The notes beneath the pieces were generated by a model that had not been told where the DNA came from, did not search any database, and saw only the letters and a list, made by a program, of their open reading frames with translations. The translations under genes and the position numbers were made by a program. A stretch of DNA of 64,000 bases from Bugula neritina (lineage: Eukaryota > Animalia > Bryozoa), in NCBI GenBank assembly GCA_964035545.1, contig OZ037772.1:7610889-7674888 (forward strand), read 5' to 3'. This document shows, piece after piece, positions 1 to 63,723 of the stretch. Positions within the stretch are counted from its first letter, which is position 1. The number at the start of each line of letters is the position of its first letter.

Positions 1-1419
1 CTTGAAGCAGCCAGCGTCAACTTTGTCTCAGGCATTCACTTCTTCGACGATAACAATTTTCTTTTAGCCGAAGCATACCTTCACGATCTCCGGGTAGTCC
101 AACTTAGAAAATCTAGAATTTCTTCTATTTGCATACTTCAACCTCCAGAACTACCAGAAAAACTGAGCTCTGGTCGCATTAATGAATGCCACATAAGATT
201 TCCAAGAAAGTTTGCAAGAGTTGCTGAAGATTCCAATAAAATAAGAATCATAGGATTAAGAAATCACTACAGCTTGGAATTTGGTTTGTATTCAATAATA
301 TATAGTTATATATATTGCAACTTTTTAAGTCTTTTTAATTCTTTTGTTAGTAAAATGAAAAACAAGTGAAATTTCTATTTTACAACAAATGAAAGTAGCG
401 GAACTATTTTACCAATTTCTGTTTTCATCTTTGGAATCTAAATTGACTAACAACATTAGATAACATTTTACCATCAAAAAAATTAGGAGACTTATGAGCA
501 AAATTTTTTTTTCTATTTTTAGTAAATACCACCAAAGTCAAACAATCAGAAACCAAACCTACAACACTAACCACGAGGCAACAAGCAACAAAAGCAACAA
601 AAACAACGGAAAAAACAAAAACACCAACAACAACAGAAACAAAAGCAACAACAACAACAGAAACAAAAACAACAACATATAGAAAGACAATAAAACCAAA
701 CTCAAAAAAGAAACCAGAAATTGAAGTGACCACCAAAGTAAAGCCTGTGGAAACTGTTAGGCCATCTAATACCACAGACGACGTCGTGCTTGTTGTTACA
801 CTTGAAGCGTTAGCCTTTTTGCTCATCTTTGTTCTGATCACCCTTGTGCTAAAATACTTTGACAATAAACCAAGTAAGTTTGAAAGCTTTTGATCAAACT
901 TAGAGAATTAAAATTTTGCGCATCATTTAATAAATTTCTAAGAAGCTGCTTCCTTTTGATACACAAATCATGCTAAAAAACAATATTTGGTTTGAACATT
1001 TATCACTGTATCTATTTTTATGCTTACAGGCAGCTGGCTTTTATAGAATTTAAATGCCACAATAGAAATGTGTACACATGCAGTTTTATTCAAATTTAAT
1101 TAATTTTTTTCAAATGTGTACACAGTTTTATTCAAGTTCATGCAATTAATTTTTTTCAAATGTGTACACAGTTTTATTCAAATTTAATTGATTTTTTTAT
1201 ATCTATAAATGTTATTTTATTTTATATTTCAACTGACCATTTCATTCTAATTTGTTATAGCTTTCAAAAATTACTTTTGTAGAAGAGAAATTTGACCTTG
1301 AAGTGCAAGTGCAGTCTTCTGAAATGATGCTTGATAATAATAATGACAACCAGGCCATTGTATCAAACTCTTCTCTGTCTAAAAAAAAGAGACGTATAAG
1401 AAAACCTCAGAATATATAA
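1..1419 (+). CDS. G1: NHL-like propeller / mucin stalk / TM receptor, 5'-partial; exons <1-283, 523-873, 1283-1419
   Basis: Frame 1 of 1-283 reads [44 protein letters not shown]...IRIIGLRNHYSLEF, collinear with the end of the G2 propeller. GT at 284. AG at 521-522 opens a Thr-rich stalk plus TM (VVLVVTLEALAFLLIFVLITLVL), with donor gtaagt at 874. Last exon reads KEKFDLEVQVQ...KKKRRIRKPQNI*. Phases are compatible. Confidence 0.85.
1066..1198. repeat. Three imperfect ~45-bp tandem copies (aaatgtgtacacagttttattcaaatttaatt...) in a G1 intron
   Basis: Unit is visible three times in direct orientation. Confidence 0.7.
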
Positions 1420-1467
1420 ACCAACTTCTTACAAAAAAGGATTCTATTTTGGTTAAAACAATCTTGA

Positions 1468-1665
1468 TCTAACTCAGAAAGAGCAGAGGCAGTGAATTAT
1501 CTATTGCCTCGTGCAGCTAGATATGCTAACAGAACAGAAGTGGTAAAATATCTTTGCAGACTACCATTAGTTAAATATGAGCGACTGTTTGCTAAAAACT
1601 CCAAAGGAGTAACAGCATTACAATTAGCATGTGACCTCAAAAGATTACAGCCACATAGCACATAA
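1468..1665 (+). pseudogene. Ankyrin-repeat-like coding relic just 3' of the G1 stop
   Basis: ATG-less frame reads SERAEAVNYLLPRAARYANRTEVVKYLCRLPLVKYERLFAKNSKGVTALQLACDLK, matching the ankyrin consensus (LhxAa...evVkyL...kn.kG.TaLhlA). Stops bound it on both sides. Confidence 0.55.
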
Positions 1666-60221: not shown

Positions 60222-63200
60222 TTAATAGCTTTTATAACTGTAGGGTCCTCGTTGGTACATTAAAGTCTGGGATCCTTTGTTGAAAGGAGTTTGGACAGAT
60301 GTTCGATAATAACTCTGTGGTGGCGTTCTGGCTACTCGGCTTGATGACACATAGGCTGAGTTTCTTGGAACACTAGTATGAAAAGATTGGTAAATGTTAG
60401 TAGTGTCCCAATGTCTTGTGGAAGGCTGCTGAGGTGGAACATCTTTGTACTGCGGAGACACTCTACTTGATACTATGGAATTTTTCAACGCCTGAAATAA
60501 TTAAAAAATAGATTTAGCATGCCTTTGATATTAGTAGATTTTAGAATATCCTTCAGACTAATAAAAAAATATAGTCATTTGTTGAAAAATCTACATACTT
60601 TTTTTCATGATTATTCTAATCGTTTTGGCCAAATTTTTATTTTTCTTGCAGTACATTAGTTTGGTTTTTTTCCTGAAAATTTTCAAAATTGAAAATAATA
60701 AGAAAAAACTGAATAGATAAATTTTTTTCACCTCATAGTCTTTTATTATATCGATATTGTTTCTTTTACTTTCTTTTCTGGGTTCATTTTGCTCTTTTTT
60801 CTTTTCTGAAACAAAATGGAGCTTGCTTTAATACAGCAACAAGCTTACCAGGCAGTTTTAAAATTTCACAACTAGATTTAAATTTTTTTTTAATAACAGC
60901 TCATCATTTTCAATATTACAATGTAGAATTACTATTTATTTTCAATATATTGCTAGAATAATTGTAAAAACAGATGTTATTGTAAAATTATTTTGCTCCT
61001 TCTGGAACTCGAACTAAAGGCCCGCTGGCAAGCAAGCAAGTCTTTCTAACCATTATCCCGCAAGGGTCAATGGGCAGACTCAATACTACATCTAATGTTC
61101 TGCTTAAAAAAGAATGTCATTCAATGACATTATTGAACGGAAGAAATGAATTTTTAAAAAATTGAATGTAATTACAATAGCATATGTAATGTAAATAATG
61201 CAACAGTTATAACAAATAACCACTTACTTTTATCCAAACATATTGCAGAAATAATGCAGAAAGCCGAAAGCAGCAAAACACTTATTGCTATCCATATGAT
61301 AAGTGCACCCCTGAATAATGTGTTTGGTGATCTATTAGAAGTAGTGACTGCAGGGTAATTTTTATTTCTCGTTGTTCCCTGTGTTGTTCTTTTCTCTGTT
61401 GGATTTACGTTTGGATCAGAGAACACGGTTGGTGCGGGCCGAAATGAGGCTGGAAAGATCGGAGACCGGGTGGGAAGTTCAGGTAATGTAGAAACTAGAA
61501 TAATTTTATCACCCATAGTAGTAATTTTTAAAACAGTTTAAAACAGGAATTAGTAGTAGTAGTGGTAGTGGTAGTGGTAGTGGTAGTGGTAGTGGTAGTG
61601 GTAGTGGTAGTGGTAGTGGTAGTGGTAGTGGTAGTGGTAGTGGTAGTGGTAGTGGTAGTGGTAGTGGTAGTGGTGGTGGTAGTAAGAGTAATAGTAGTAA
61701 GAGTAATAGTAGTAGTAGTAGCAGCAGTGATGGTGAACAGCAGGCAAGGTTAGGTTATTAAATTTAATATCCAAAGAGGACCCAATGGGAAAATAAATGT
61801 GTAAATGTTAATTTCCAAAGCCTGCTTCAAGAAATGTGTGTGGTTAATAAAATTTACACAAGGCATGGCCTTACATGCGAAATAGTCAAAATTATATTAT
61901 CGCAGATTGGATATAATAAACATATTAAGAGGTTTTTTTTAGCAAAGACAGTATACAATCCAAAGGAACTTTAAAAGTAAATTGAGCAAAACATTTTATT
62001 CAATTTAAATAAATGATAACTATAACATAACATAGCATAACTAACTGTGACTAACATCTCCCGGCATGAATATCATATTATTATGTAGCGGCTAAAGCAC
62101 AATTATCTATTCTGTTCATTATTTGTTGATAAAAATCTGTCAACTAAAAATAACAATCCAACTACTTACTTTTGTAGACGAGCTCTTGAAAATTGTACCT
62201 AGAAACAATATATATTATTTTTCTTTGGGCATTGTTGTAAAGTTGCTTAGGATAAACTAGTTGACATTCTTGTATAGAACCCTCTTTTACTTCATAGGGT
62301 GTAGAATTTTGAGGAATGCACAGCGTTGTGACTCTTGAAGTTTTAAGATTTGCTACTCTAATCACGTGATTCCCGTAGTCAGCGATTAAAAATGTGTCGT
62401 TAGATAAGAACAGCATGTGTTGAGGATTTCGCACAAGCGATGTCGTGAAACTACCATCTCTGTGATCACCAAAAGGGCCTCCGAGTACAAAAACCTCTCT
62501 GTTTCCTGAAATCACGCGGCTAATATTTTTGTATCGAAGCATAAAGACTTTTTTGGAATCAGGGTGAACGGCCAGACTAATGATATGTATTGTGGCAGTG
62601 TGAATCGTTTCAATTTTCCATACATTTAGTCGGTCAATTTTTGAAAGTTTGCGAATACTTCTTCTATTATTATCGAGAAAAATCATTGCATTGGCTGCAT
62701 AGTAAACTAAACTTGATATTCTCTGTATTCCTGCAATATCGATTGTACCATCCCTCTGTCTGTATTTATTGCACTGTCCGGCGAACTCAGCTGTTTTATA
62801 CTGTACTCGATCAATAATTCGAATACAGGAAACATCACTGTCTGCCACCCACACTTTATTATTCATGGAAACCACGCCTTCAATCCTTCCGAATTTAGCT
62901 AAACTGGTCACACCCTCTTCATAATCAGGTAAAGTCAAAAATCCACTAACTCGAGTCAGTTTGAAAAAATCTGGTGTTGTCAACACCGAGTATCCAACGA
63001 CAATTAGGTAGTTCCCTTGTATATGAGCGTCTTCAGTTATAAATTTTATTTTTGCATTAAAATTCCTAAGATTTTCTATAGTGAATCCATACTCCTGCAC
63101 AAAGTTTTGTAGTACTGCCTTTGTTCGAACGTAGGAAAAGTTGAACCTAAAAGTTAAAATTATAATATAGATTGTATAAAACGCCAAGCTTGTAAGATTT

Positions 63201-63723
63201 CTTAGTAATATATGGTGGAAATAAAAGATGAGAGTGTCAAAGCAAATTGTTTTTGACCTATGAGAGCGCTTTGTGAGCATACGAGAATAATGGTTAGATA
63301 CTTTATTATGGGCATATAATATACTATAGGTGATTTATCAACCATTTAGCACTCTATAATTATATGGAAAGCGACGTTTTTAAAATGTGACAATTGAAGT
63401 TTAATCAGAAAAAGTACTCATCAACCTCATAAATACCAAAGTTGTCTCAGCAAGAGACTAAAAAAATGTTCAATTAATAGCGCCACACACACACACATAC
63501 ACATGCGCGCATGTACCCTCGCACACACGCATGCACAGACACACGGGCATATACAAAATAAAACAATCTTCATCAAGAGTATAACAATATATTAATTTTA
63601 GAGGAAAACAAATAAGAGGAACAAATTATGTTACTTTTATAAAGCATATATACTTTATTCTTACCCCCCTGTATCGCTTTTAAGAATTGTCTTCCCTTCA
63701 GATAAGTATTGCACACTTGAGAT
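60222..63723 (-). CDS. G10: NHL-like propeller / stalk / TM receptor, ATG exon not found in window; exons 63723-63665, 63146-62170, 61494-61228, 60805-60732, 60491-60222
   Basis: 59-nt exon ISSVQYLSEGKTILKSDTG. Propeller lies in ORF 62162-63280 (WVADSDVSCIRIIDR, FAGQC, IADYGNHVIRVAN). TM is ALIIWIAISVLLLSAFCIISAICL. Tail reads ...IIKDYE|ALKNSIVSSRVSPQYKDV...PYSYKSY*. Confidence 0.87.
60975..61066 (-). mobile_element. SINE family 2 copy, degenerate
   Basis: Reverse complement ccttgcgggataatggttagaaagacttgcttgc...gttcgagttccagaaggagcaaaataattttacaataa parallels 3210-3310. Confidence 0.5.
61551..61725. repeat. (GTGGTA)n hexanucleotide microsatellite in a G10 intron
   Basis: Direct observation. 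Confidence 0.95.

Follow-up and report, generated by a model that had tools for sequence, protein, structure and literature searches.

The 64-kb stretch of DNA analysed here (the window) contains ten paralogous propeller exons of ~0.95 kb each, detected by tblastn and HMM searches. The ten genes to which they belong are probably members of a large Bugula-type family of single-pass surface glycoproteins that form a germline-encoded ligand-binding or adhesion repertoire. At least 132 propeller matches are found in the 216-Mb genome, and a cluster on C8 at 7.58-8.03 Mb (~450 kb), of which the window is a slice, holds ~60 intact full-length copies. Pseudogenes are rare, with ~3 of ~65 copies in the cluster broken. 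A preliminary description of the window had recognised a clustered, very divergent family and had expected the array to run past both window ends; matches beyond each end confirm this, and the array is larger than the window. This receptor-like NHL-propeller family is undescribed and so far known only from Bugula-type bryozoans. Its nearest named proteins are uncharacterised (hypothetical) Bugula neritina proteins, so the genome analysed is taken to be that of a related bugulid bryozoan. A literature search found no paper describing this family, in agreement with the preliminary description, which named no characterised family of such architecture.

In the proposed gene plan an upstream coding exon (a signal peptide where visible) would be followed by a single ~0.95 kb exon encoding the six-bladed NHL beta-propeller, in which two Cys pairs are invariant. 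The stalk, which in most genes is Thr/Pro-rich and presumably O-glycosylated, would share the next exon with one TM helix, and further small exons would encode a disordered cytoplasmic tail with no catalytic domain. The propeller exons are as follows, with the tblastn/HMM match of each in brackets.

1..283, + strand: G1 propeller exon, 3' part, HMM match to profile positions 199-289, phase-1 donor TTG/GTTTGT (match 1-315, copy cut by the window start)
6608..7563, + strand: G2 propeller exon, 956 nt, AG...GT bounded, no stop (match 6606-7724)
13060..14018, + strand: G3 propeller exon, AG...GT bounded, open (match 12995-14050)
21623..22575, - strand: G4 propeller exon, AG...GT bounded, open (match 21108-22601)
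27977..28920, + strand: G5 propeller exon, within an open frame at 27957-28943 that spans profile positions 4-291 (match 27969-28943)
35364..36307, - strand: G6 propeller exon, AG...GT bounded, open (match 35344-36348)
40108..41051, - strand: G7 propeller exon, AG...GT bounded, open (match 40088-41071)
48359..49299, - strand: G8 propeller exon, AG...GT bounded, open (match 48342-49409)
56562..57523, - strand: G9 propeller exon, Pfam NHL 25.2 bits, the sequence used for folding (match 56557-57540)
62170..63146, - strand: G10 propeller exon, AG...GT bounded, open (match 62165-63280)

All nine complete propeller exons are bounded by AG and GT, have a length of 2 mod 3 and lack a stop codon. A phase-1 donor closes the exon at the same aligned position in all ten genes, and a phase-1 acceptor lies 46-103 nt (mostly 61-76) upstream of the domain in nearly all of 32 paralogues compared. 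The G1 exon starts ~675 nt upstream of the window and is present in its entirety in L004. The shared scaffold motifs noted previously, AG..GY.EG...FG.I.G, W(V/I)AD..N.CIR, G.C...DG.F..A, D...H.LR..D...(S/T).C and C....P, all appear in the consensus of nine and of 32 paralogues, and the four Cys residues are invariant across the 32. A possible frameshifted copy had also been suspected, but the HMM search found no frameshifted propeller exon in the window and G5 is intact. A propeller has on average 1.7 sequons for N-glycosylation, versus 2.7 in shuffled sequences; this lack of enrichment is a point against the proposed surface glycoproteins.

The Pfam NHL model scores above threshold in two of the nine propellers and weakly in four more, and Pfam TEN_NHL matches none of these nine. 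An AF2 model of the G9 propeller (pLDDT 85.5) gave a TM of 0.78 in a Foldseek search and VIA-align Z scores of 29.8 for SOQ1-NHL, 29.1 for NHLRC2, 21-25 for teneurin NHL and 22.7 for TRIM71. A PDB profile search matched NHLRC2 and SOQ1 at E ~1e-20, and Bacteroides surface glycan-binding NHL proteins were among both the fold and the profile matches. The assignment to an NHL propeller like those of NHLRC2/SOQ1 and teneurins thus holds; it is six-bladed, with NHLRC2/SOQ1 closest by profile and by fold (Z 29-30, rmsd 2.5-2.8, ~280 residues) and teneurin NHL next. However, NHLRC2/SOQ1 share only 16-17% identity with the bryozoan propeller, both invariant Cys pairs are confined to the bryozoan family, and the NHLRC2/SOQ1 propeller is fused to thioredoxin-like domains in single-copy proteins that are not mucin-stalked type I surface proteins. 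Teneurins also carry an extracellular NHL propeller on an animal single-pass membrane protein and function in cell-cell recognition, but they are type II proteins ~2,800 residues long that also contain EGF repeats, a YD shell and a toxin-like domain, and a genome has few copies. The bryozoan proteins have no folded ectodomain other than the propeller, are probably oriented as type I and are encoded by tens of genes in tandem. In Mycobacterium tuberculosis PknD (Z 20.6) an NHL-type six-bladed propeller is likewise the ligand-sensing ectodomain of a single-pass receptor. PknD differs in being bacterial and single-copy and in having a cytoplasmic Ser/Thr kinase, whereas the bryozoan tails have neither a kinase nor another Pfam domain.

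In all ten genes a TM-helix exon lies on the same strand 0.4-1.3 kb downstream of the propeller. The signal-peptide and stalk/TM exons are the following.

6001..6065, + strand: G2 signal-peptide exon (MLIPLAVLVVLVISISSRDYN), phase-2 donor TAT/GTAATA fitting the propeller-exon acceptor phase
523..873, + strand: G1 Thr-rich stalk and TM exon, helix 783-845 with a Glu inside
8234..8509, + strand: G2 stalk and TM exon, helix 8419-8481
14568..14804, + strand: G3 short basic stalk and TM exon, helix 14726-14788
19993..20241, - strand: G4 Thr-rich stalk and TM exon, helix 20009-20071
29300..29413, + strand: G5 TM exon, helix 29344-29406, acceptor uncertain
34606..34916, - strand: G6 poly-Thr stalk and TM exon, helix 34636-34698
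39364..39684, - strand: G7 poly-Thr stalk and TM exon, helix 39392-39454
47105..47287, - strand: G8 short stalk and TM exon, helix 47118-47183
55494..55775, - strand: G9 Thr/Pro-rich stalk and TM exon, helix 55501-55563
61228..61449, - strand: G10 Pro/Thr-rich stalk and TM exon, helix 61241-61303

The acceptor is phase-compatible in nine or ten of these exons, which also carry a phase-1 donor 7-10 codons past the helix, and basic residues follow the helix; the G6 exon stops at TAA where G7 carries the donor. Frame, in-frame indels and splice sites are preserved in B. neritina for three stalk/TM exons. The G1 frame, both its splice sites and the TM Glu are retained in L025, and the G4 exon shares 85% protein identity with L022 and retains its splice sites. 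Exon phases and conservation in orthologues therefore bear out the order of propeller, stalk and single TM helix, and the propeller exon is predicted on the same basis to be joined to the TM exon. The mucin-like stalk described earlier applies to seven of the ten genes, in which it is Thr/Pro-rich, but not to G3, G5 and G8, whose stalks are short. Similarly, a signal peptide had been ascribed to all members, and a clear exon in the right phase was found for G2, but those of the other genes could not be fixed; the donor of a candidate G4 signal exon is absent from its orthologue. Since a single gene of the window has a convincing signal peptide, the probable outside-facing topology rests on the disulfide-type Cys residues, the Thr-rich stalk and the positive-inside rule.

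Four features relate to the cytoplasmic tails.

18565..19062, - strand: candidate G4 tail ORF, 165 aa, Lys/Ser-rich and repetitive, borders approximate
42775..43497, - strand: candidate terminal tail exon of G8, a 240-aa Ser/Gln/Lys-rich ORF
60222..60488, - strand: candidate G10 tail ORF, 88 aa, Tyr/Ser/Pro-rich, borders approximate
37865..38361, - strand: frame-broken relic of a Ser-rich tail ORF, found by tblastn as three pieces in different frames with 47-79% identity

A Pfam search of the candidate G4, G8 and G10 tail ORFs returned no domain. The G4 ORF is ~50% identical and open in L022. A relic exon had been reported in the window; the HMM search found no relic propeller fragment there, and the only relic detected, at 37865-38361, is a copied tail ORF with a broken frame, whose intact counterpart is the ORF at 42775-43497.

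The members of the family are old. Median identity between paralogues is 30%. In a tree, 17-18 sister pairs consist of one gene from this genome and one B. neritina gene (SH-aLRT 97-100), the species label is scattered as though at random, and there are only two possible young duplications among 32 copies. Each sampled orthologue is under purifying selection: nine pairs have dS of 0.33-0.52 and dN/dS of 0.07-0.24, and loops change only mildly more than strands. The dN/dS values are 0.15 for G1 (L025), 0.14 for G3 (L027), 0.07 for G4 (L022, 94% protein identity), 0.11 for G5 (L028), 0.08 for G7 (L024 / KAF6039484.1, ~92-93% identical), 0.24 for G9 (L001, 76% identical) and 0.19 for G10 (L029). 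Two pairs that had been taken for recent duplicates are not: the G1/G2 duplication (dS 0.45, dN/dS 0.35) predates the species split, and G6 and G7, 88% identical, have a dS of 0.41, about that between the species. Birth-and-death turnover, which had been suggested, does not agree with 1:1 orthologues, ancient paralogues and so few broken copies. The 1:1 orthologues, low dN/dS and few pseudogenes fit a stable repertoire with fixed specificities.

It is proposed that the stalk presents the propeller to the cell exterior, where the propeller would bind ligand, and that each paralogue may have retained its own specificity since before the two Bugula species split, which would make the family a germline-encoded receptor or adhesion repertoire. 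Putative ligands are glycans or proteins of microbes or of the environment, or partners on cell surfaces, and candidate short linear motifs in the tails may mediate signalling or sorting. An innate-immune or other recognition role is possible.

Other readings of the array have been weighed. Like Hydractinia Alr, KIR/LILR and Siglecs, the family consists of divergent, short-tailed surface proteins with a single membrane pass that are encoded in tandem. Those systems are built on Ig-like folds, with highly polymorphic alleles and/or fast gain and loss of genes, whereas the bryozoan genes have NHL propellers, 1:1 orthologues, dN/dS of 0.07-0.24 and low sampled polymorphism. An innate immune receptor family with rapid turnover, comparable to KIR/LILR/Siglec receptors, in which activating and inhibitory members would be paired and would signal through Tyr motifs and charged TM helices, is an unlikely explanation. 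Four points agree with it: the Glu of the G1 helix has no counterpart in the paralogue G2 but is retained in L025 of B. neritina, Tyr is abundant in the candidate G10 tail, G1 and G2 show the dN/dS of 0.35 given above, and glycan-binding surface proteins of Bacteroides are among the matches. Turnover is slow, however, with paralogues far older than the species split, two possible young duplications at most, few pseudogenes and tails that match no Pfam domain. A homophilic or heterophilic adhesion code in the style of teneurins or clustered protocadherins, specifying zooid or cell identities in budding or neural wiring, appears improbable. Purifying selection on 1:1 orthologues and a single array of many conserved but very different ectodomains are seen in clustered protocadherins too, and the bryozoan propellers are kin to the teneurin NHL domain. 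Against this, every bryozoan gene carries separate TM and tail exons and the genes occupy both strands, which leaves no common constant region. Membrane-anchored ecto-enzymes, PAL-like lyases or lactonase-type six-bladed propellers, are the least probable reading. The order of parts in PAM/PAL is signal peptide, six-bladed propeller, linker, TM helix and unstructured cytosolic tail, which the bryozoan genes match, and fold matches at Z 19-21 include several lactonases as well as PAL (PAM; invertebrate membrane PAL1, Z 20.5). They nevertheless rank well below NHLRC2/SOQ1 and teneurin by fold and are missing from the sequence-profile matches. PAL is not a multigene array, and the bryozoan family lacks its invariant zinc-binding His and catalytic Tyr/Arg set; invariance is confined to G, D, C, R, W and C of the NHL scaffold and extends to no set of His, Tyr or acidic residues. 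Identity of ~30% among ~60 paralogues is also unlike an enzyme with one reaction.

The preliminary description had suggested an immune or allorecognition-like system. In the allorecognition reading, a histocompatibility or kin-recognition complex, polymorphic propellers would recognise alleles of their own type and control the fusion of colonies or the settlement of siblings. The animal forms colonies, and allorecognition genes are not known from any bryozoan (PMC7576161). The genes are clustered and encode divergent surface proteins with a single membrane pass, and teneurin NHL propellers, which are fold relatives (Z 23-25), take part in self-assembly (entry 8fia). The 1:1 conservation and low polymorphism found here largely contradict the allorecognition reading, and we regard it as very unlikely; old members conserved between species are a poor fit to an allorecognition locus. 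B. neritina variants from several samples are 97.4-100% identical (0-8 residue differences in ~300), and no hypervariable region was found in the orthologue differences, the strongest window being only ~2x the mean. The family is thus probably not a set of hyperpolymorphic allorecognition determinants. At one locus, G8, the sequenced individual has two clearly different haplotypes (DNA run X1, ~2.7% SNPs over 5.9 kb, this locus only), but heterozygosity is equally high in introns and exon and the species is reported to be highly heterozygous overall. The second G8 haplotype carries an in-frame CAA insertion at 48670 and 9 SNPs with 5 residue changes within 27 codons at 49128-49208.

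An ORF listing, together with tblastn searches using the nine long ORFs, recovered from the window ten copies of a domain about 300 residues long, in agreement with the preliminary description, which had counted at least ten propeller paralogues. The tblastn matches are located as follows.

1-315, plus strand, propeller copy truncated at the window start
6606-7724, plus strand, propeller copy
12995-14050, plus strand, propeller copy
27969-28943, plus strand, propeller copy
21108-22601, minus strand, propeller copy
35344-36348, minus strand, propeller copy
40088-41071, minus strand, propeller copy
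48342-49409, minus strand, propeller copy
56557-57540, minus strand, propeller copy
62165-63280, minus strand, propeller copy

The genes that carry these copies are called G1 to G10. A sensitive HMM scan of all open frames of at least 18 codons in the window gave no propeller matches beyond the ten, and the window is therefore without relic or frameshifted propeller fragments; a relic exon and a possible frameshifted copy had been described. The scaffold motifs reported earlier are all present, both in the consensus of nine paralogues and in that of 32, the latter being the ten of the window plus 22 taken from every other 10 kb of 7.57-7.96 Mb on C8, the contig with the main array, which totals about 65 copies. 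Nine columns are invariant among the 32 paralogues (G34, D70, C75, R77, G91, C93, W144, C242 and C261), and four of these are Cys. The window is AT-rich (27-35% GC) and contains abundant microsatellites of (TA)n and (CA)n type, which marks it as eukaryotic DNA. Immediately behind the propeller donor of G4 lie about 21 copies of a 21-nt unit (21147-21584); the frame stays open, giving a raw ORF of 498 aa, and Bugula neritina contig L022 aligns weakly to this repeat array and over a much shorter stretch.

The domain is predicted to be a six-bladed propeller of the NHL repeat superfamily. An AlphaFold2 model of the G9 propeller, obtained from a nine-sequence alignment, has a pLDDT of 85.5 and a pTM of 0.84 and contains 23 strands in six four-stranded blades, and its 11 best VIA-align matches are NHL-type propellers throughout (Z 22-30). 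Foldseek and VIA-align identified the lumenal NHL domain of SOQ1 (Z 29.8) and NHLRC2 (Z 29.1) as the closest folds. These are followed in VIA-align by a teneurin-like protein and teneurins (Z 21-25) and TRIM71 (Z 22.7), and at lower ranks by PknD (Z 20.6), PAL (Z 20.5, rank 19) and lactonases. When the family profile was compared with the PDB, NHLRC2 and SOQ1 were matched at E ~1e-20. The Pfam NHL family, PF01436, scores 25.2 in G9 and 25.6 in G10, above the 20-bit cut-off, and is weak in four more of the nine propellers; in the family consensus, blades 2, 3 and 5 clearly show the canonical aD..N..R motif. The fold ranking and the PDB profile matches thus show that the domain had been placed correctly among NHL propellers.

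Teneurins are type II proteins in which the NHL domain is accompanied by EGF repeats, a shell of YD repeats and a toxin-like domain at the C-terminus, whereas in the window genes a stalk and a TM helix follow directly after the propeller exon, and neither the propeller ORFs nor the remaining ORFs scanned had a match to the Pfam domains TEN_NHL, YD or EGF. The PAL/PAM lyase has a conserved Zn-binding His triad and catalytic Tyr/Arg, whereas the nine invariant columns of the 32 paralogues include no His and no Tyr. These paralogues conserve no set of catalytic residues, and PAL is missing from the PDB matches of the family profile, which makes an enzymatic function unlikely.

The window genes share one exon plan. 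Every propeller exon opens at an AG acceptor behind a pyrimidine tract, 52-103 nt ahead of the conserved domain, and its first base completes a codon, a pattern common to nearly all of the 32 paralogues. All propeller exons end at one aligned position in a phase-1 donor, mostly GTRAGT-like, and the nine complete ones are 941-977 nt long, stop-free and of a length equal to 2 modulo 3. In each gene a stalk/TM exon with a phase-compatible acceptor lies 0.4-1.3 kb downstream on the same strand; it contains the stalk, a hydrophobic helix of 21-22 residues and then basic residues, with a phase-1 donor 7-10 codons on. In all ten genes the ectodomain is thus followed by one TM helix with basic residues at its cytosolic end, and three orthologues keep this arrangement. 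The three orthologous B. neritina contigs keep the frame of the stalk/TM exon, in-frame repeat indels and both splice sites. These junctions are predicted from phase and conservation; a search of sequencing runs found no RNA run containing the locus, and run X1, the sequencing run mapped over part of the window, is of DNA. The stalk had been called mucin-like, and it is Thr/Pro-rich in seven of the ten genes (G1, G2, G4, G6, G7, G9 and G10); that of G3, G5 and G8 is short and not mucin-like.

The conserved phase-2 intron upstream of the propeller means that a further 5' coding exon exists. A signal peptide had been proposed for all ten genes. Three heuristic scans and an orthologue comparison settled this for G2 alone, where an exon of matching phase is clear at 6001-6065, and did not fix such an exon for the other window genes; clear signal-peptide exons were also found in two or three paralogues outside the window. 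A candidate in G4 (23219-23095) was dropped since its donor is not conserved in the orthologue. Because the signal peptide is clear only in G2, we infer that the propeller faces outside from the Cys pairs, which are invariant, from the Thr-rich stalks and from the positive-inside rule. N-glycosylation sequons, examined as a sign of secretion, showed no enrichment.

The donor beyond the TM helix indicates that additional tail exons exist. Finding them by a cross-species identity profile was abandoned, as introns are about as conserved (75-90%) as exons and the profile does not discriminate. The candidate tail ORFs, in which no Pfam family was matched, are the following.

18565-19062, minus strand, low-complexity candidate tail ORF
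42775-43497, minus strand, low-complexity candidate tail ORF
60222-60488, minus strand, low-complexity candidate tail ORF

A frame-broken copy of the second of these, a Ser-rich ORF of 240 aa, is located between G7 and G6 (37865-38361, minus strand; 47-79% identity in three frames); the G6/G7 duplication probably brought it along as a relic tail exon. The stalk/TM exon of G6 meets a TAA at 34606-34608 (minus strand), which is exactly the donor position of G7 (G|GTAAGA in G7 versus GTTAAG in G6), so G6 may lack a tail or may be spliced from a weak donor. The TM helix of G1 (783-845, plus strand; VVLVVTLEALAF...) contains a Glu that is kept in the B. neritina orthologue, whereas the helix of its close paralogue G2 is uncharged. 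This Glu could be a pairing site for a charged adaptor.

A profile search of the 216-Mb genome to which the window belongs gave at least 132 matches and confirmed that the array reaches past both window ends. About 60 full-length open propeller copies are found at 7.58-8.03 Mb on C8, seven additional copies at 8.71-8.73 Mb, and more distant clusters on five other contigs (C2, C7, C9, C4 and C3). Only about three copies of the main array are not intact, namely one with a TAA, a short fragment and a copy divided by a 17-kb insertion. The two parts of the divided copy, C8:7588798-7589082 (profile positions 1-96) and 7606060-7606665 (positions 94-292), share a strand, are separated by 17 kb and are one propeller exon interrupted by a large insertion. 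By exact-sequence look-up, the nearest database proteins cluster with the B. neritina hypothetical proteins KAF6039484.1, KAF6021168.1, KAF6021516.1 and KAF6033541.1, and the remaining members of those clusters derive from metagenomes and sequencing runs associated with B. neritina. These proteins are 70-94% identical to the window genes and the flanking introns align at about 71-86%, which indicates that the window genome belongs to a bugulid bryozoan that is close to, yet distinct from, the published B. neritina (PMC7576161). Beyond Bugula-derived ORFs, word-indexed searches returned only generic bacterial NHL proteins, an exhaustive profile search was dominated by giant bacterial NHL-repeat proteins, and atlas searches led to generic, mostly bacterial NHL clusters.

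The median identity among the 32 paralogues is 30%, the sole close pairs within the window being G1/G2 (74%) and G6/G7 (88%). A quick maximum-likelihood tree was made of the 32 paralogues and 26 B. neritina representatives, and its results and those on orthology cover 32 of the approximately 65 array copies. The tree contains 17-18 sister pairs, each of one sequence from the window genome and one from B. neritina (SH-aLRT 97-100), with short terminal branches set on long internal branches, and the species label changes on it as often as a shuffled label does. G1 is sister to its B. neritina orthologue, with G2 outside that pair, and only G6/G7 and one other pair are possibly as young as the species split. 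In nine orthologue pairs dS is 0.33-0.52 and dN/dS 0.07-0.24 (Nei-Gojobori), the latter being 0.04-0.22 in strands and 0.09-0.26 in loops. Orthologue differences follow paralogue variability with a rho of 0.53 and peak only about twofold, in a low-confidence loop between C242 and C261. The duplicates that had been regarded as recent have a dS of 0.41 (G6/G7) and 0.45 (G1/G2) and are therefore about the age of the species split or older.

Across B. neritina samples, variants of any one gene are 97.4-100% identical, a range taken within 90% clusters, outside which more divergent alleles would fall. When run X1, DNA of a heterozygous individual, was mapped to the G8 region (44600-50500, 5.9 kb), a second haplotype was seen at half depth, distinguished by about 161 SNPs and by 13 indels. 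The G8 propeller exon is heterozygous for 9 SNPs that give 5 residue changes in 27 codons (49128-49208), near the N-terminus of the domain, and for an in-frame CAA insertion at 48670. The haplotype differences are equally dense in introns (37 in 385 nt) and in the exon. No haplotig was found in the assembly as a source of the second allele. High heterozygosity has been reported for the species (PMC7576161) and the G8 figure stands without a genome baseline, so that it is no evidence of special polymorphism.

The array that emerges from these data is old, stable and strongly diversified, and purifying selection maintains each member. Such a pattern is expected if every receptor or adhesion molecule has its own fixed partner, but not for a KIR-like family with fast turnover. 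Allorecognition determinants are argued against by the dN/dS of 0.07-0.24 in nine pairs and by the 17-18 well-supported 1:1 pairs, and the immune or allorecognition-like role given in the preliminary description is unsupported by the tests run, which point to stable 1:1 orthology and purifying selection. In the model considered most likely, an O-glycosylated stalk would hold the propeller off the membrane, the propeller would bind a ligand and a short disordered tail would bear sorting or signalling motifs. Candidate ligands are glycans or proteins of microbial or environmental origin, molecules on the symbiont surface, cues for settlement and partners on other cells. A more far-reaching suggestion, which we consider rather doubtful, is that bugulids, and perhaps bryozoans more widely, have a germline-encoded surface recognition repertoire of about 60-130 genes built on an NHL beta-propeller and not on Ig, LRR, lectin or SRCR folds, and thus a new structural class of animal recognition receptor. 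Such a repertoire might serve the recognition of microbes, the symbiont (Endobugula) or settlement cues, with some members as paired activating/inhibitory receptors.

Bryozoa are among the least molecularly studied animal phyla and, to our knowledge, no bryozoan recognition or immune receptor has been characterised. Full-text literature searches found no paper that joins NHL repeats to bryozoans or describes a transmembrane NHL receptor family, the bryozoan genome and transcriptome papers do not mention the family, and no bryozoan allorecognition gene is known in the literature searched. The family is real, large and receptor-like, and apparently undescribed. What is new is its domain architecture, together with the size of the array: a known fold is combined with a domain order for which no description was found, and a single array takes up about 0.2% of the genome. 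The family is clearly under selection and so must serve something important in these animals. It provides concrete candidates for the genes by which a colonial filter feeder perceives microbes, a symbiont passed on vertically, cues for settlement or neighbouring cells. Judged by their evolutionary pattern, these genes are unlikely to be the allorecognition determinants long sought in bryozoans, which saves effort and redirects that search.

Several repeats were also observed in the window. The segment 44600-44993 has a depth of 24,000-61,000 in run X1, versus about 130 elsewhere, and is a very high-copy genomic repeat. A dispersed repeat of about 170-200 nt, MITE- or SINE-like in appearance, is present in both orientations (10326-10511, 10848-11039, 20576-20773, 25599-25765, 44791-44860 and 51811-51991) and also in B. 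neritina contigs L022, L025 and L026. At 16612-17684 a compound microsatellite, (GACA)n/(CA)n, extends over about 1.1 kb and gives rise to several spurious Cys/Val-rich ORFs of up to 361 aa, and a 100-nt simple repeat is found within 61559-61674.
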